This document shows positions 1,690-63,327 of a stretch of 64,000 nt of DNA, piece by piece. The notes under the pieces are model-generated. The model saw only the letters and a program-made list of their open reading frames with translations. It was not told the origin of the DNA and searched no databases. A program made the translations under genes and the position numbers. The stretch spans positions 1 to 64,000 of IMG/VR virus record IMGVR_UViG_3300042545_001134; one strand, given 5' to 3'. Each line of letters starts with the position of its first letter. Position 1 is the first letter of the stretch.

Positions 1690-3762
1690 ATGACGACAAG
1701 AAATTTAGTTTCCTTTCAGAAGGGTTTGGTATGTTCACCAAACGACGGTCAAGATAATAGAATCGCAGTGGCGACCGTTCAATCTCACTTAATGGAGTGG
1801 GGTTATATGTTAGACGAAGATGCATTCTTCGCATTATCCAAATCAGATTTATCGTTCATAGAGAACTTCAACAACGAAGTCGTTACACATTTGAAAAATG
1901 TAATGGGAGGTAATCGTAATTACCAACCTTTATATAAAAACTTCCCACAAGAAGTTATGTCAATGTCTGATTTCGAATTGTATATTAATGCAATTACCCA
2001 CTATTGGAGTAACGGTACTTGGGAACCATCTACCCATACTTTTGAAAAAGAAATCAAGTTTGAGAAAATCAAATACAACTTGATTAAGTATGGCACATCG
2101 GAAAGATTTTCACAAATCTTCACTGATTTGGTTTCAATTAATACATCATTGACACCTCAAGACCTTGAGATTGTTAAATGGTTCGTTAACAGTGGTGAAA
2201 CATTAGTATTCCCTAATACAATTCCATTCAAAGAGAATTTGTGTACATTGGCGGCAATGGGAATTGAGGGATTACCAGTTAAGACATCAACTGACGTGTT
2301 AAGAATCGCCGTTCATCTTTCAGGTGGAGACATCAGTTTACCTAAAGTTCCTGAAAAGGAAATTAGATTAAACAGATGGTCATCTGCAAAGGGTGAGAAC
2401 CCTGAAAGAGAAAAGTTTAAATTCAAGAAGTTCACTCGTAAAGAGAGACGTTACATCTTGGGTTTACTTGAGAACACAAACTGTGACCCACGTGAAATGG
2501 TTTTAAAAGACCAACGTTGGATTCGTTTAGGTGAAATATTACATCCAGGTGAATATAAAAATCAATTCCCAAAATCTTTTGATGCATTCAATAAGATTAG
2601 AAACGAGAAAGTAAAATCTTGGTTCTCACTTGTTAATGAAGGTTTCAATAAAGGTCTTGAGAATGGTTTGAGAGTATTGTCTCAAAAACCCGGTGAATTC
2701 GCAAGAAGAATCGATTGGTTGGTTCGTACATATCCAAAAGATATCGAAGTAATCATGACACACTTCAGCGAAACGGTAAAAGGTACATCGAACAAAGTAT
2801 TGTTTGAAGTTTACGCTCACTTTGAAAATCGTACTGAACCTATGGATAATAGGTCCGTTATGATAAAGGGGTCAAGAAAACGTACCATGTTACCATCACT
2901 ACCAGCAATCCCTAAAGAGATTGTGGAAACCATCCACTCTAAATTATTTGAAACACTTAGAGATAAGTTTTCAGTAATGGATTCTTTGGGTAACTGTTGG
3001 ATTGATGAGGAATTGAAAAAGATTCCTTTACCAACCAACATGAGAAGTATGAACTTTTCAACTAAACCAACAATCAGAGGTCAAAGAGTTCCACTCGATA
3101 ACCCTGATGCAAAAGTTATCAGACCTTTCATTCATTGGATGGATAAACATGGTAGTGAAGATTTGGATTTAAGTGTTACGTTTGTTGGTGAAAAAGTGTC
3201 AGATGTATTATCTTTCAGTAACTTGAGAGTTGGTGAATCTGTTCACTCGGGGGACGTGAGACACAGACAGGGTCCTTGTGCTGAGTACATCGACATTGAT
3301 ATGGAAGATGCATTGAACCGTGGATACAAATATGTAGTCATTGACGTGAGAAACTTCAATGGTGGTAGTTTGAATTCACTTGAAACATCTTTTGGTATCA
3401 TGGAGAGAGAACACCCCGAATCAAATAAAACATGGTTACCTGAGACAATTTCAAATTGTCAATCATTGGGGTCAACGTCGTCAAACACTTTGATTTCAAT
3501 CATTGACCTTGAAACCAAGGAGTATATCATGTTGGATATAGATTCAGAAGGTTTTGTAACCGCAAGAAGTGACTTCAAAAACACCCTTAAAGTAATTCAA
3601 CAATACGCTGAGTTACCAAAAGTAAGTGTTTACGACCTTATTCTTCTACACGTAGAAGGAAGAGGTAAACAAGTTACCCTTGACGAGAATGTGGATACAC
3701 ATTTTAAGTACGAGGACTTCTGTTACTCTTATGAAGAGACAGGAAAATTGATGGGTGTGTAA
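1690..3762 (+). CDS. Large helical-repeat protein with C-terminal TerD-like domain (resembles the MXAN_6230/SCO0854-type family)
   Basis: KPGEFARRIDWLVR, DLDLSVTF, HSGDVRH..AEYIDID motifs; family assignment from memory. Confidence 0.6.
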   Translation: MTTRNLVSFQKGLVCSPNDGQDNRIAVATVQSHLMEWGYMLDEDAFFALSKSDLSFIENFNNEVVTHLKNVMGGNRNYQPLYKNFPQEVMSMSDFELYINAITHYWSNGTWEPSTHTFEKEIKFEKIKYNLIKYGTSERFSQIFTDLVSINTSLTPQDLEIVKWFVNSGETLVFPNTIPFKENLCTLAAMGIEGLPVKTSTDVLRIAVHLSGGDISLPKVPEKEIRLNRWSSAKGENPEREKFKFKKFTRKERRYILGLLENTNCDPREMVLKDQRWIRLGEILHPGEYKNQFPKSFDAFNKIRNEKVKSWFSLVNEGFNKGLENGLRVLSQKPGEFARRIDWLVRTYPKDIEVIMTHFSETVKGTSNKVLFEVYAHFENRTEPMDNRSVMIKGSRKRTMLPSLPAIPKEIVETIHSKLFETLRDKFSVMDSLGNCWIDEELKKIPLPTNMRSMNFSTKPTIRGQRVPLDNPDAKVIRPFIHWMDKHGSEDLDLSVTFVGEKVSDVLSFSNLRVGESVHSGDVRHRQGPCAEYIDIDMEDALNRGYKYVVIDVRNFNGGSLNSLETSFGIMEREHPESNKTWLPETISNCQSLGSTSSNTLISIIDLETKEYIMLDIDSEGFVTARSDFKNTLKVIQQYAELPKVSVYDLILLHVEGRGKQVTLDENVDTHFKYEDFCYSYEETGKLMGV

Positions 3763-3789
3763 ATCACCTGTCAGTTCTTTGAAATATTA

Positions 3790-4100
3790 ATGTGGCTATG
3801 TGAGTCACTGAGAGGATAACCTTTACCTATTATAGGTGACCACGTAGTGGTACTATCTTAGGTCTTAGAGAAGGTGAAAGTATCGGTGCAAATGTCTTAC
3901 TTCTAACATACAAAAATCAGATACAACGTTAGACACACAATTCTCCACATAAACTTATTGACGGCTATGTACCGGGTTACTTCTACAAAACAATTGGATG
4001 TTAAACCACCCGTACTCTTTCCGTCTACCTTATTACCGGCTATGAGTGTAGTTACTTCTAAACCTATCTAAATGAAAAAACCACTCGTTCAATTTCCGGT
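3790..4100 (+). ncRNA. Three tandem homologous structured RNA units (GGCTATG...TTACTTCTA)
   Basis: Units at 3790-3950, 3961-4024 and 4035-4100 keep the same loop sequences with different, compensatory stems. Confidence 0.7.
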
Positions 4101-4140
4101 ATATTTTATTAACAATAACAATAATTTAAAAACAACAATT

Positions 4141-4590
4141 ATGACAACATCAAAAACAACAGATGAAAAAGTAAAAGAACTATTCGACTTAGTTCAATCA
4201 AAAAAATTAGCAATTGAAAAGGCTGAAAGACCTTGCTGGAAAACAAGTGGTAATTTCGGTTACTCAGCAAATTCAGCACATGACAGAACGTCTATCCCAA
4301 CGGTAACAGACACTCGTAAAATCGTTGAAATGTTCGCATTTCTAATCGATAGAAAAGATAAATCTGAATCTGCAGCAAAAGAACTTGGTGTGGACTATAA
4401 TTTTACTTGGTTAGGATTCGGTGTTGATGAGTGGAAAGAAGATTTTCAAACTCGTGTAAACCAAATCTCAGTCCAAGAAAAACGTAAGGAACTTGCCGAA
4501 TTAGAATCTCGTTTGAATGCAATTATCTCACCTGAGTTAAAGGCACAAATGGAACTTGAGGCAATCGCCAAACTTTTAGAGAATAACTAA
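4141..4590 (+). CDS. Hypothetical coiled-coil protein
   Basis: ORF 4072..4590; likely start MTTSK at 4141 after an A-rich leader. Confidence 0.8.
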   Translation: MTTSKTTDEKVKELFDLVQSKKLAIEKAERPCWKTSGNFGYSANSAHDRTSIPTVTDTRKIVEMFAFLIDRKDKSESAAKELGVDYNFTWLGFGVDEWKEDFQTRVNQISVQEKRKELAELESRLNAIISPELKAQMELEAIAKLLENN

Positions 4591-6450: not shown

Positions 6451-6857
6451 GGGGATGAATGGAATTGATTGGCGTTGGTATTGTACGTGGGCACGTAGTC
6501 GGATGTCATCTACGACTTAAATAAATGGTGGTAACAATTAGACGGCAACGTTTACAACAACATGGAAGTAGCTGGTTTACTAGCAACTTCTAAGGTGGCA
6601 GCCTAACCGCTCCCACTGGACGGGTCGATGGACATATAACCTTGGAACAGAAGTCCTCACGGTGTGGTACCTACCCAAAAAGGTACAAATGGTCTCGTTC
6701 AGAGTGCTACCATAAAAAAAGTGAACTCGACACAGTTTCTGATAACGATGTCAAAATAGGAATCAGATATTTGTCGGTTGTGAATAATCGAATAAACGTG
6801 TAGTCCATTTATGGTATGGCGAACAAGACGAGGGTTCAAATCCCTCCATCTCCACCA
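6451..6857 (+). ncRNA. ssrA: tmRNA; tag (A)GNVYNNMEVAGLLATSKVAA
   Basis: 5' GGGGATGAATGG, 3' T-arm GGTTCAAATCC and acceptor CATCTCCACCA, tag ORF 6544-6606, TACCTTTG promoter upstream. Confidence 0.95.
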
Positions 6858-6892: not shown

Positions 6893-7378
6893 TTATTTTA
6901 CTACTGTTTGACTTGGGTCGGATAAATTTTGAATGTAAGCGTCAATTAATCTACTAACGGCTTCGGGTTTTTCGTCAGCCTTAAATTTTACTTTAATTTT
7001 AGCCAAACCCGACCTGTCCGTATTCTTACCTGAATCCACCTCAATGCCTTTAATATTGTGTTCATACCCCTGTTTCTTAAATAACCCCAAAAGGGACCTC
7101 TTTAAATCTGAAACATTGGTTTCATCTTCACCAAATATTAATCTGGCTTCAAATTCAATATCTAATTCATCTAAACCAATAGATGAATGGTCCGCCAATA
7201 TGTATAGAGGTACAACTAATTCCCTCTCCCCAATATAGAACGTTTTTACTTTAGGTGTACCGTCTTCATTGAAGTAGTTTCTTAATGAATTAATATGTTG
7301 TCTTTCACTTATACCTTGAGCGACCATTGCCGCTTCCAATAGACCACCAACAAGTTCCTCAATGTTCAATCTAGCCAT
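6893..7378 (-). CDS. DUF2589-family protein
   Basis: VPLYILADHSSIGLDELDIEFE pattern; tandem with the next gene. Confidence 0.65.
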   Translation of the reverse strand: MARLNIEELVGGLLEAAMVAQGISERQHINSLRNYFNEDGTPKVKTFYIGERELVVPLYILADHSSIGLDELDIEFEARLIFGEDETNVSDLKRSLLGLFKKQGYEHNIKGIEVDSGKNTDRSGLAKIKVKFKADEKPEAVSRLIDAYIQNLSDPSQTVVK

Positions 7379-7435: not shown

Positions 7436-8032
7436 TTATTTACTTGGGTCAACTGTAAGTGGAATTAAAGATGGCTCTAACATTTGTGTCAAATAGTCAG
7501 ACAATTTCAACATACCTTCAGTTGGAGGTAATTGTTCTGCATGAACTTTAACTTCATATTTTGCTGAGTTATCTGTACTTCTTGTGTTTTCTTTGTGGGT
7601 TGCCACTTTACCCGCAACTGTTGCGTTAAATTTCATACCCCACCAACTTGCAGATGCTGAAGCCGAATAAGAAGATTCACTGTCAGAACTTTCTTTACTT
7701 GTTTCAGATGTCTTAACTTCCATTGTAAATGCAATGTCAGCCGATGTAATTGCCAAAGAAGGTAATGGAACTAATGGTAACATTGGAACTTTATTATACA
7801 ATTTTTGTATTTCTTGTTCACCAGTTTCTCCGTTAGTAACAACCCTGTTCATTTCAACATCTAATGAACGAGCGGTTGTTTTACCGTCTTTATCTTTTTC
7901 AAATGCAACTTCAGAGATGTATCTCCAAGTTACTTCATTTAATTTTGCTTGACCTTTTGCCATTCCGACAATAGGTGAAACAATCAAATCTTCGATTGGA
8001 AGACCTGCGAAATTGTCTGCGATTCCTGCCAT
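7436..8032 (-). CDS. DUF2589-family protein
   Basis: FAGLPIEDLI..P, VPMLPLVPLPSLAI, STDNSAKYEVKVHAEQ. Confidence 0.75.
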   Translation of the reverse strand: MAGIADNFAGLPIEDLIVSPIVGMAKGQAKLNEVTWRYISEVAFEKDKDGKTTARSLDVEMNRVVTNGETGEQEIQKLYNKVPMLPLVPLPSLAITSADIAFTMEVKTSETSKESSDSESSYSASASASWWGMKFNATVAGKVATHKENTRSTDNSAKYEVKVHAEQLPPTEGMLKLSDYLTQMLEPSLIPLTVDPSK

Positions 8033-9979: not shown

Positions 9980-11110
9980 TTAACCAAAAACCCCCATCGC
10001 TTCAGCGTCCGCCATGATATCGGGGTTTACATCTGTTGATGTATTTTCATTATCTGTCGATGCAGTTGCACTTTGAGTTTTTTCTTTTGATGGTGTTAAT
10101 GCCGTAACAACACCCGCCGTTGCCACACCTACCGCCACAGCCTTTGCCCCTTGTTTTGATAATAATTTACCTAAAAATGCTTGAAGTTTAGTTAGTACAC
10201 TATCAATTGCGCGTAAAATAACTGAAATGACAGTATCTCCCTTAAATTTCTTTGCCAACGAGTTACCTACGTTTTTTAATGTGCCTTTTAATGCTGGTAT
10301 CTTAGTTGCTAATGAGTTTAACATTTTAACCATTGTAGGTGCTGCTTTTTTAACACCAACCTTTTTAATCATTGGAATTGATTTACTAAATACTTTACCA
10401 ATTGCGGCGGTCAACACTAGAGACAATGCGTCCCCAATTAAAAACATGAAAGGTGATTCCTTTCTTTCGGGGTCTTTCGGGTCATAATCATTAGTTGCGA
10501 TTTCATAGATATCTAATAACACAACAATAGCCCAAACAATTGCGTTTGTTTTTACCGCAAGTATTGAAACAACAACGTCAATAACAATACCGACACCTGT
10601 GTATAATCCACGACGAACCCATCTTAAAAATGGTAGAACTCCGTTTTTAAACACCCACTCCATACCTTTCATGATTGTACTACCGACATTCTTGACTCCT
10701 GATTTTATACCATCCCATGCAGTTGATGCTCCCGATTTAATAGTATCCCAAAGACCTTCGTTAATTATTTCACCGTTTTTAATCCATTCATAAACCATAT
10801 CTTTAGACCACTTAGTGTTCTCAAGAATATTGTTTACTTCACTATGAACACTTTCAGTGATTGTATCACCAAGTTTCGTAAGGGATTCTTTTATTAACTC
10901 GTTGAATACATGGGTATTTTCCCATATACTTCCAATTGATTTTCCATCTCCACCAGCAACAAAAACCTCGTCCATCATGATAAGGTATTTGTTATTTTCA
11001 GTTAATACAAAATCAAACACAAAATCTCTTTTTTCAACAAGACCATACATCTTTTTGATGTTCTGTTTTTCAGACTCTGTAATTACGATTTTTCTTTGAT
11101 TTGAGTACAT
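9980..11110 (-). CDS. Putative virion/membrane protein with ITES leader
   Basis: KIVITESEKQNIKKMYG; hydrophobic helices. Confidence 0.65.
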   Translation of the reverse strand: MYSNQRKIVITESEKQNIKKMYGLVEKRDFVFDFVLTENNKYLIMMDEVFVAGGDGKSIGSIWENTHVFNELIKESLTKLGDTITESVHSEVNNILENTKWSKDMVYEWIKNGEIINEGLWDTIKSGASTAWDGIKSGVKNVGSTIMKGMEWVFKNGVLPFLRWVRRGLYTGVGIVIDVVVSILAVKTNAIVWAIVVLLDIYEIATNDYDPKDPERKESPFMFLIGDALSLVLTAAIGKVFSKSIPMIKKVGVKKAAPTMVKMLNSLATKIPALKGTLKNVGNSLAKKFKGDTVISVILRAIDSVLTKLQAFLGKLLSKQGAKAVAVGVATAGVVTALTPSKEKTQSATASTDNENTSTDVNPDIMADAEAMGVFG

Positions 11111-61872: not shown

Positions 61873-61985
61873 AATAAAAAGTATTTAGTGAGTGGGTTAT
61901 TACCCCGAGATTATCTCCTCCTGTTTATTCAGGGAATCACTATGGGTTGTACAACCAACCCCATCACTTGTGGTGATGAAAATAT
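61873..61985 (-). ncRNA. Guide scaffold copy 1 (omegaRNA/sgRNA-like), overlapping the cas 3' end
   Basis: Homologous to 63751-63868; hairpin GGGTTG-GTTGTA-CAACCC on the minus strand. Confidence 0.7.
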
Positions 61986-63327
61986 CTTGTTTTTTCTGTA
62001 GACCTTTTAATAGTCTACCTTTCTTACTCTTACCTTTTACTTCGTTACCTTCAGCGTAAGTTATATTATATGCCCCAACAATATCGGCATCCTTTAGTTT
62101 ACCGTAATCGTCACACTCAATGTTAATACAGGTGAATTTGGTTTTATCCTTATCCTTTCTATTCTCCTTATCCACATTCTTACAAGTTGGACATGTAATA
62201 GATGTATCTTTTGGATTCACCCACAGGATTTGAATCCCCACCATCTTTGCTTTATATTCAATATCCGTTTGAAGTTGATAATATGCCCACGATTTTAAAA
62301 ACAAATCTTTAGTGTTTGTGGTTATACCAGTTAAGTCCTCCATCTTAATAATACCCACATTGTATTGTTGGGCAATATCAATAACATCCCTACTGATATC
62401 GTGATTCATTAACACGGACCAATTGTGTTCCTTTTCCTTTAATCTTTCCATTCCCAACATCTTTCTTGTTCTTCCATGTCCACCCTTGGCAAACTTCATG
62501 GATTGTTGAAGTGCTCTTCGTATCTTATAGAACTTCATTCTCTCAGTTTGAATCTTTTCACCGATTGAAATCTGTGATGGTTGATGTTTCTCCCCGTCAA
62601 TGTATATTGATACTGGTCTGTTTATACCCAAATCAATTCCCATTACCTTATCAGGAATCATATCCTTTGATTTTGTATCAGGTACTGTACATGTTAATAA
62701 TAAAATAAAATCTTCATCCTTAATTTGAATAGAACTGGTGTTCATTTTGTATTCACCATTCAATATTCTATTGACAATTTTTTCATTACCACTTCTATCC
62801 CTTCCGTAATGTAATTTGAATTTAATTCCTTTGTGAATACTTCTCTCTGATGACGATAATGGTAAGTTAAAAACATAATCCTCCCCTTCTTTACTCACCA
62901 CAGGTTCTTTATTTACCGTACCTTTAAATGGTATTGTTAATGATGTTTTTCTAAATGATGGTATTGACATCTTTCCTTGTAAAATATCATAAAAACTCTC
63001 ATCAATAGTTTTATATATCTTTTGACAAAACGACGATTTTATGTTCGATGATATGATGGTATTTTTCTTCATTAAGTTATAACCCATATTCTCCACCATC
63101 GCCCCGTATTTTTCCTTGAAAATCTCTTTTGATTTAACTTTAGTAATATTAGTTGAATTTTTTATCTCATCCAACTCGTACTGGTTACAAACAGTTAACC
63201 TAATAACTTCGTTTCCAATTTGAACCAAGTCAGATGCAATTCTTTTTACGTAATTGTACGATGCAGTTCTGTCCTTGCTGGTTTCACCAACCGCAATCAA
63301 TTTGATTTTTCTTGTGATTATTGACAT
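61900..63327 (-). CDS. cas12f: Compact type V effector, Cas12f (Cas14)/TnpB-derived RNA-guided nuclease, 475 aa
   Basis: RuvC-I VMGIDLG, GGHGRTRK, RuvC-II KMEDL, W.YYQLQ..IEYKA, Zn finger CPTC..C...EC, RuvC-III DADIVGAYNI; adjacent array. Confidence 0.85.
   Translation of the reverse strand: MSIITRKIKLIAVGETSKDRTASYNYVKRIASDLVQIGNEVIRLTVCNQYELDEIKNSTNITKVKSKEIFKEKYGAMVENMGYNLMKKNTIISSNIKSSFCQKIYKTIDESFYDILQGKMSIPSFRKTSLTIPFKGTVNKEPVVSKEGEDYVFNLPLSSSERSIHKGIKFKLHYGRDRSGNEKIVNRILNGEYKMNTSSIQIKDEDFILLLTCTVPDTKSKDMIPDKVMGIDLGINRPVSIYIDGEKHQPSQISIGEKIQTERMKFYKIRRALQQSMKFAKGGHGRTRKMLGMERLKEKEHNWSVLMNHDISRDVIDIAQQYNVGIIKMEDLTGITTNTKDLFLKSWAYYQLQTDIEYKAKMVGIQILWVNPKDTSITCPTCKNVDKENRKDKDKTKFTCINIECDDYGKLKDADIVGAYNITYAEGNEVKGKSKKGRLLKGLQKKQDIFITTSDGVGCTTHSDSLNKQEEIISG

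Follow-up and report, generated by a model that had tools for sequence, protein, structure and literature searches.

Genomic setting of the array

The stretch of DNA analysed here (the window) comprises the first 64 kb of the 310,691-bp IMG/VR record of a giant phage. Near its start, a 378-nt gap between two plus-strand open reading frames, at positions 1690–3762 and 4141–4590, holds an array of three structured RNA units. The upstream frame encodes a protein of 690 amino acids, designated p690, and ends 27 nt before unit 1; the downstream frame, directly 3' of the array, encodes a 149-aa protein assigned to phrog_2574. With its mechanically chosen start (4072) the latter frame would begin within unit 3, but homologues favour the ATG at 4141 and the length of 149 aa. 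Since the 149-aa protein is kept 3' of the array only in the clade of the window and in one other locus (L206; loci retrieved in this work carry L numbers), its membership of the system is uncertain, and its comparison with the PDB gave noise only.

The genes around the array form a translation-related island, with four tRNAs (149–605), the SmpB gene (1100–1528) and a tmRNA (6451–6857, tag GNVYNNMEVAGLLATSKVAA), all on the plus strand, and also an RNaseH-like protein, a metallophosphoesterase and a glycosyltransferase. Beside the tmRNA gene lie two adjoining genes for DUF2589 proteins (6893–7378 and 7436–8032, minus strand), followed by a tape-measure-like protein (9980–11110), so that the island abuts structural genes. 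At the far end of the window, a 475-aa frame on the minus strand (61900–63327) combines a Cas12f1-like TNB domain with an OrfB_IS605 domain and thus represents a gene for a TnpB-type transposon-associated nuclease in a phage genome. Searching the array region by blastn against GenBank phages gave no match, and neither a promoter nor a terminator consensus was found in the window between the array and its neighbours.

Architecture of the three units

The motif GGCTATG occurs three times in the 64 kb, both strands counted together, as does TTACTTCTA, and all occurrences of both are located within 3790–4100; GGCTATG followed by TTACTTCTA at a spacing of 4–14 nt was found twice, compared with none in 100 shuffles. 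The coordinates and motif strings of the original prediction, which had described three tandem hairpins in this interval, were correct. The units share a common plan, which begins at the 5' end with the helix P1, in which two invariant G-C pairs close a short run of variable pairs, and with the segment CUAY (J5'). It continues with helix P2a of 4 bp, a 1-nt bulge, helix P2b (3 bp plus a U-A pair) and the single-stranded UACUUCUA, and ends with a variable apical region, the 3' strands of P2b and P2a, the 5-nt segment NMUUW (J3') and the 3' strand of P1. P1 thus ends in GG/CC and is followed by a 4x5 internal loop, CUAY facing NMUUW. All three units fit this plan. In some units of related phages the bulge is replaced by an insert of 30–95 nt.

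Unit 1 (3790–3950, plus strand) is of the large form. Its P1 is made by 3790–3795 with 3945–3950, and its J5' CUAU occupies 3796–3799; P2a pairs GUGA (3800–3803) with ACAC (3935–3938), including one A-A mismatch, and P2b, the distal half of P2, pairs GUCU (3894–3897) with AGAC (3931–3934). Between them, at the bulge position, a domain of 90 nt (3804–3893) is inserted, which has its own covarying helices, with compensatory changes among 14 orthologues, including those of 13 relatives. UACUUCUA is found at 3898–3905, the apical region at 3906–3930 and J3' AAUUCU at 3939–3944. Unit 2 (3958–4027, plus strand) shows the canonical short form, with P1 at 3960–3964/4021–4025, J5' CUAU at 3965–3968, GUAC (3969–3972) paired with GUAC (4012–4015), the bulged C3973, and GGGU (3974–3977) paired with ACCC (4008–4011); UACUUCUA (3978–3985), the apical region (3986–4007) and J3' UCUUU (4016–4020) complete it. 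The bulged C noticed previously in this unit is real and lies at the family-wide bulge position.

Unit 3 (4033–4102, plus strand) is also of the canonical short form, with a slightly weakened P2. Its P1 is formed by 4034–4039 and 4096–4101 and its J5' CUAU lies at 4040–4043, followed by P2a, GAGU (4044–4047) paired with GUUC (4087–4090), the bulged G4048, and P2b, UAGU (4049–4052) with ACUC (4083–4086), which contains one mismatch; UACUUCUA, the apical region and J3' AAUUU are located at 4053–4060, 4061–4082 and 4091–4095, respectively. The helix of this unit is in a different register from that originally drawn, the family register being GAGU-g-UAGU with ACUC-GUUC and AAUUU as J3'; in the unit 3 orthologues of L133 and L123, P2 is perfect when paired in this way. 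Two further details of the original drawing have to be modified. CTAT is conserved and unpaired, as proposed, but it is not a hairpin loop, being instead the 5' strand of the internal loop that faces the 5-nt NMUUW. Similarly, TTACTTCTA is conserved but not wholly unpaired, as its first U pairs in the U-A pair closing P2, and the unpaired invariant block is UACUUCUA.

A tandem DNA repeat and a CRISPR-like or ToxI-like array were considered and rejected, as TRF finds no repeat and the copies are 75–83% alike in the conserved segments only. The idea that UACUUCUA is an anticodon loop (CUUCUAA, Arg-UCU-like) was also dropped, the flanking bases being unpaired when the unit is free-standing; L206 alone has the CUA of UACUUCUA doubling as an anticodon. 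The complement of UACUUCUA is absent elsewhere in the window, where no cis target was thus found.

Covariation and the covariance model

The outer stems were recovered by minimum free energy folding, and the thermodynamic z-scores were unremarkable (−0.6 to −2.7); stability was therefore dropped as evidence for structure, and the support for the fold comes from comparison and not from energy. In a close set of 43 non-identical short units from related phages, in which 13 pairs were scored, 96.1% of the cells form standard pairs and 11 of the 13 pairs show compensatory changes. The corresponding controls gave 71% paired cells in shuffles and 33–49% when the 3' partners were slid by 1–3 columns. 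A distant set of 53 units had 92.1% of its cells paired, with compensatory changes in 12 of the 13 pairs, these counts being somewhat biased by the retrieval pattern, although many units in these loci were found by the model alone. Across the distant set GG, CUAY, UACUUCU(A), the UU of J3' and CC are near-invariant. The earlier suggestion that stems differing in sequence but still pairing reflect natural covariation is thereby borne out. The many G-U pairs make the fold strand-specific, and the strand is that of the flanking genes; an element acting at the DNA level (origin, pac site or cruciform) is disfavoured, as these pairs tie the fold to the transcribed strand.

A covariance model, R1, was built from the alignment of the 43 close units, units 2 and 3 among them. 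Applied to the window, R1 finds exactly the three units of the array, with 72.6 bits (E 8e-14) for unit 2 and 62.9 bits (E 1e-11) for unit 3, both belonging to the training set. Unit 1 gives a partial match of 18.5 bits, since the model has no room for its 90-nt insert. The three units are members of one strongly supported structured RNA family, and the view of the locus as an array of structured small RNAs holds, given the strong covariation and the strand-specific fold.

Distribution in phages and bacteria

Arrays of three to seven units occupy the same place in 24 related phage contigs, whose proteins are 72–91% identical to p690. The search was widened with a stricter sequence pattern applied to viral contigs and to one genome per prokaryotic species, followed by filtering with R1, a first loose pattern scan of the viral contigs having given mostly chance matches. 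Units were found in many unrelated huge-phage contigs (95–400 kb) and also in some contigs of MAG or bacterial origin, so that the covariance-model search of other genomes, proposed as a check along with the original prediction, yielded structure-conserving homologues, both close and distant. The pattern scan of the genome collection returned about as many matches as expected by chance and was useful only after the covariance-model filter. Among 100 bacterial and archaeal loci fetched by pattern alone, six pass R1 at E<1e-3; a p690 homologue is encoded in five of these six and in none of the other 94, which represents a nearly independent test.

Four GenBank phages with distant p690 homologues were also examined, and divergent units were seen in unannotated gaps beside the gene. 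The Xanthomonas phage XacN1 (homologue ORF396) has two units upstream, with the motif variant UUCCUUCUA, the Rhodococcus phage Weasels2 (gp266) has three units downstream, and the Ruegeria phage RpAliso (RPALISO_9) has one unit upstream; in the uncultured gut phage MT835874, whose homologue is unannotated, the match beside the gene is weak (E = 0.31). The long unannotated gaps beside the homologues of RpAliso (L313, 656–2491) and XacN1 (L310, 3490–3986) hold divergent units and possibly further RNAs, only one unit being detected by the model in the 1.8 kb of the RpAliso gap. At one further locus (L286/L314) the gene lies among ordinary bacterial chromosomal genes, with no tRNA nearby, and a single GC-rich unit ends 10 nt before its start codon.

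Association with tRNAs

Other loci have units within their tRNA arrays, in the orientation of the tRNAs, and in six of these (L216, L156, L164, L203, L175 and L045) the unit starts 0–5 nt past a tRNA 3' end. The apical regions themselves often resemble parts of tRNAs: hairpins like an anticodon stem-loop are present in 30 of 91 apical regions versus 10.3 ± 3.0 in shuffles, a count somewhat inflated by orthology, and T-arm-like hairpins (GGUUCGAAUCC) occur in the apical regions of one orthologous group. A unit of L206 (531–658) encloses a full tRNA-Met with CCA, with 2 nt between UACUUCUA and its start and 3 nt between its end and P2.

In the clade of the window, the array closes with a tRNA gene that default ARAGORN misses and whose anticodon arm carries an insert of 49–65 nt. 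This insert is a circularly permuted version of the constant part of the unit (hereafter the handle), with P1 capped by a loop of 4–5 nt and the ends open at the apical side. In the permuted form 89.7% of the cells are paired, compared with 20–43% when the partners are slid. Such genes close the arrays at 6787–6911 of L123, about 6329–6460 of L126 and about 6651–6778 of L136, and, on the minus strand, at about 340–524 of L206 and about 6775–6912 of L163. Notional removal of the insert leaves canonical cloverleaf tRNAs; the intron mode of ARAGORN, with the insert at positions 30–34, identifies Gln(UUG) in L131, Ala(UGC) in L136, a suppressor (CUA) in L206 and a tRNA with GUA in L163, and the type of L123, read by eye as CG|AGG-CUGUUAA-CCUCG, is tRNA-Asn. 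The anticodons vary between close relatives on similar tRNA bodies (GUU, GAA, UUG, UGC, CUA and GUA), which suggests that the anticodon of the embedded tRNA may turn over fast. A permuted model, R2, found embedded copies only in the clade with p690 of at least 59% identity; R2 includes the tRNA flanks and is maybe too specific.

The unit thus comes in three arrangements, free-standing, around a tRNA, and circularly permuted within a tRNA anticodon arm, and for phages or bacteria no description of this three-way arrangement was found in the literature searched. Canonical tRNAs with a CUA anticodon, i.e. amber suppressors, labelled tRNA-Pyl by ARAGORN, were also seen in relatives (L126 1238–1310, L130 3813–3885, L133 3834–3908, L135 3312–3386, L137 1012–1084 and L140 3572–3643). 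Their presence suggests that TAG may be recoded in this phage group.

The adjacent protein p690

Homologues of p690 with 24–59% identity (tblastn) are encoded directly beside units, on the same strand, in 13 distant loci (L087, L152, L156, L157, L161, L170, L173, L175, L206, L216, L225, L264 and L286), and every distant locus encoding such a homologue has a unit adjacent to it on the same strand. The fetched stretches of the unit-bearing loci L155, L203, L045 and L002 contain no p690 gene; in two cases (L164/L173 and L161/L187), another locus from the same contig does encode p690. In RpAliso the p690 gene neighbours that of a CCA-adding enzyme. An HNH endonuclease gene was noticed between tRNA genes of Weasels2, just upstream of the p690 homologue (L312, 1079–1648).

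The protein consists of an all-alpha N-terminal part (about residues 1–440), with many invariant Arg, Lys and His residues, and a C-terminal TerD-like beta-sandwich in which the acidic metal-site residues are conserved. Its AlphaFold model is confident (pLDDT 87), and the only significant fold matches in the PDB are TerD proteins; no solved structure matches the helical part in the fold search. Comparison with PDB sequences (phmmer and profile search) gave nothing, and Pfam has no family or domain for p690. The protein falls in phrog_33734, in a family of more than 2,190 clusters, and NCBIfam relates its body to the MXAN_6230/SCO0854 RING-domain family, below the model cut-off, in agreement with the ESM Atlas. 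Neither TROVE, vWA nor other known RNA-binding domains were recognised in p690 by Pfam, PDB profile search or fold search, and TROVE gave no match at E<=1 in p690 and 17 homologues. To our knowledge, TerD domains have not been described as RNA binders.

Transcription of the array

The region is present in four freshwater or lake metatranscriptome assemblies. RNA contigs over the array span 3568–4027 (run X1), 3841–4039 (run X2, without differences) and 3846–3994 (run X3); in run X3 the depth is 60 over 3846–3994 compared with 6.7 for a contig on the adjacent p690 gene. The tmRNA reaches depths in the hundreds and several neighbouring genes have zero, and this unevenness argues for RNA over contaminating DNA. 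The evidence consists of assembled contigs, carrying neither strand nor end information, and DNA admixture is possible; with this reservation on their content, the metatranscriptome contigs show that the array is transcribed. Within the tmRNA, variant joints (skips of 68–150 nt) were seen in different runs.

Searches against known RNA families

The whole window, scanned with Rfam 15 at gathering thresholds, gave only tRNAs and the tmRNA. With cmscan of 3600–4300 at E<=10, two chance-level matches to unrelated families appeared and no Rfam family could be assigned, including known small self-cleaving ribozymes and group I and II introns; a group I intron is also rejected on size. Neither ARAGORN nor the Rfam tRNA model called a tRNA within 3790–4100. 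Nothing relevant came from literature searches on the motif strings, on TerD in connection with RNA or on tRNA introns of huge phages. As already supposed in the original prediction, the units are not assignable to a known family, and with no Rfam 15 entry and no description found in the literature searched, the RNA family is apparently undescribed.

Proposed function and alternative explanations

The handle combines covarying helices with about 17 fixed unpaired nucleotides, and since it tolerates two insertion sites as well as circular permutation, it behaves as a self-contained three-dimensional module. The companionship with the TerD-domain protein holds in phages of several bacterial phyla and on a bacterial chromosome. 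That the units bind this protein is strongly suggested by their linkage to one protein family across 24–91% identity; as the protein is their sole constant companion over this range, the units are taken as its cognate RNA ligands. It is probable, in our judgement, that they constitute an RNA family whose handle is the cognate binding platform of the adjacent TerD-domain protein and presents tRNA-like cargo. The handle would consist of P1 with its two G-C pairs, the CUAY/NMUUW loop, the bulged 8-bp P2 and UACUUCUA, and would accept insertions at the P2 bulge and in the apical region. Its cargo may be a hairpin resembling an anticodon stem-loop, a T-arm-like hairpin or a whole tRNA, or else the handle itself may be placed in a tRNA anticodon arm, the variable and often tRNA-like apical part presumably being the working end. 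The units would be transcribed with neighbouring genes or tRNA arrays, and for units located behind a tRNA, maturation of the tRNA 3' end probably defines the 5' end of the unit. The RNA-protein particle formed in this way would most likely link the protein with RNAs resembling tRNAs or with tRNA-recognising factors. We infer the physical binding, the processing of the units and the downstream function from these comparisons; the last of these, by analogy with Y RNA and Ro60, might lie in tRNA processing, in surveillance or in the interception of anticodon-directed host factors.

The main rival to this binding platform, which we consider unlikely, is an excisable element, an intron-like or processing cassette that the neighbouring protein or a host enzyme would cut where P2 meets the apical region. 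The permuted copy would be spliced from tRNA anticodon arms, with ligation by another enzyme, tRNAs in apical position would be released, and the free-standing units would be relics or regulators of the machinery. The clean cloverleaf tRNAs that ARAGORN in intron mode obtains after removing 49–65 nt are what excision would produce, the complete tRNA-Met with CCA inside a unit of L206 is in line with release, the same two junctions would serve both topologies, and the invariant Asp, Glu, His and Lys residues of p690 are compatible with an enzyme. However, the distance between the invariant motif and the inferred 3' junction varies (+4 to +13), the scanned proteins of the window included no recognisable RNA ligase or splicing endonuclease, and close relatives differ in the anticodon of the embedded tRNA, which would be odd for a decoding tRNA. 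Furthermore, the permuted form was found only in the clade with p690 of at least 59% identity, whereas the family is far wider and includes a tRNA-free bacterial locus. A more elaborate version, somewhat less likely still, is a protein-dependent system of RNA excision and rearrangement in bacteriophages and bacteria, in which the handle would be a new tRNA intron as well as a leader/trailer clamp cut by the TerD-domain protein, keeping tRNAs, the amber suppressor included, inactive until the protein is made, and displaying fast-changing anticodon-loop decoys against host defences.

The linkage to p690 could instead mirror cis-regulation of the protein's mRNA, the units serving as a leader or trailer that binds the protein on its own message for autoregulation or transcript stabilisation. 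The position of the units, on the strand of the gene and adjacent to it, is as this would require, as are the single unit of L286 ending 10 nt before the start codon and the array of the window, joined to its neighbours with no separating promoter or terminator consensus. We nevertheless regard it as improbable, because a locus may contain as many as seven divergent units, located upstream or downstream of the gene, and units also occur far from the gene in tRNA arrays and right behind tRNA 3' ends, from which processing would release them; their cargo is diverse and tRNA-like, and the array depth in run X3 is about nine-fold that of the adjacent gene. A small self-cleaving or otherwise catalytic ribozyme of a new class is very improbable. 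Circular permutation and large peripheral insertions are features of hammerhead and twister ribozymes, and the natural tolerance of the units for both, together with helices that covary freely around about 17 nearly invariant unpaired positions, would suit a catalytic RNA; but almost every conserved nucleotide is a pyrimidine or A and a conserved, unpaired core rich in purines is lacking, none of the known ribozyme models gives a match, and the strict association with a single protein family speaks for an RNA-protein particle. As for a Y RNA of the YrlA type bound by a Ro60 orthologue, the resemblance is general only, comprising a bulged terminal stem, a tRNA-like apical module and multiple copies beside a protein gene in phages (PMC4201824). 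The chance that the units belong there is negligible, and membership is refuted: there is no Rfam match, the partner has no TROVE or vWA domain, and a GGUCCGA-like motif is absent from all three units.

Relation to known systems

The genes of Y RNA and YrlA lie beside that of the protein, often several per locus and also in phages; the RNA ends pair to a stem that binds the protein through a conserved bulged region and includes a GGUCCGA-like Ro-binding motif, and the distal part mimics a tRNA (PMC4201824). The units described here are likewise small structured RNAs by a protein gene, with a terminal bulged stem and a tRNA-like distal part, so that the reminder of Y RNA and Ro60 in the original prediction stands as an analogy and not as a family assignment. 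They differ in that the partner is helical and TerD-like, Ro60 being composed of TROVE and vWA, and in their signature of CUAY, NMUUW and UACUUCUA, the 5' strand of the stem reading NNNGG-CUAY-NNNN in place of GGUCCGA; furthermore, units are also found permuted inside tRNAs and wrapped around a tRNA.

With tRNA introns, i.e. the archaeal and eukaryal bulge-helix-bulge introns, permuted tRNA genes and bacterial group I introns in anticodon loops, the embedded copies share the insertion in the anticodon arm of canonical tRNA genes and the occurrence of the same element in permuted arrangements relative to the tRNA. In contrast to those introns, the 49–65 nt are far too few for a group I intron, a bulge-helix-bulge motif was not recognised by eye, the junctions being ambiguous by 1–2 nt, and the element is mostly free-standing, with a dedicated linked protein of unrelated fold. 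An RNA encoded next to the gene for its presumed binding or processing protein is also the arrangement of type III toxin-antitoxin systems (ToxI-ToxN), of omega RNA with TnpB or IscB and of retron ncRNA with its reverse transcriptase. Unlike ToxI-type arrays, the units are not near-identical repeats, their stems differing and covarying; p690 does not belong to any known family of endoRNases, nucleases or reverse transcriptases, and no guide-like terminal segment is present.

RNase III hairpins of the phage T7 type combine two stems with an asymmetric internal loop of about 4x5 nt between them, and the units resemble them in being hairpins in phage polycistronic transcripts with such a loop. 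They differ in having an invariant single-stranded 8-mer on the apical side, a dedicated protein and copies on a bacterial chromosome and inside tRNAs. As recognition by RNase III explains none of the 8-mer, the partner protein, the occurrence on bacterial chromosomes and the insertion into tRNAs, processing sites of this kind are less likely than the protein-binding handle.

Significance

The array would add a widespread and strongly constrained RNA family and would provide a first functional clue for the very large p690 family, whose members are encoded by giant phages with Bacteroidota-like, actinobacterial, proteobacterial and gut hosts and by some bacterial chromosomes. Three cultured phage-host pairs carry the system, XacN1 with Xanthomonas citri, Weasels2 with Rhodococcus erythropolis and RpAliso with Ruegeria pomeroyi, and direct experiments are thus possible. 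Were the excision and rearrangement reading to be true, it would mean a new type of tRNA intron, timed activation of tRNAs and anticodon decoys against anticodon-directed host defences. The findings tie p690 to tRNA biology and point to an unrecognised RNA-protein machine; they make testable why huge phages carry large tRNA islands and what the unannotated gaps of those islands contain.
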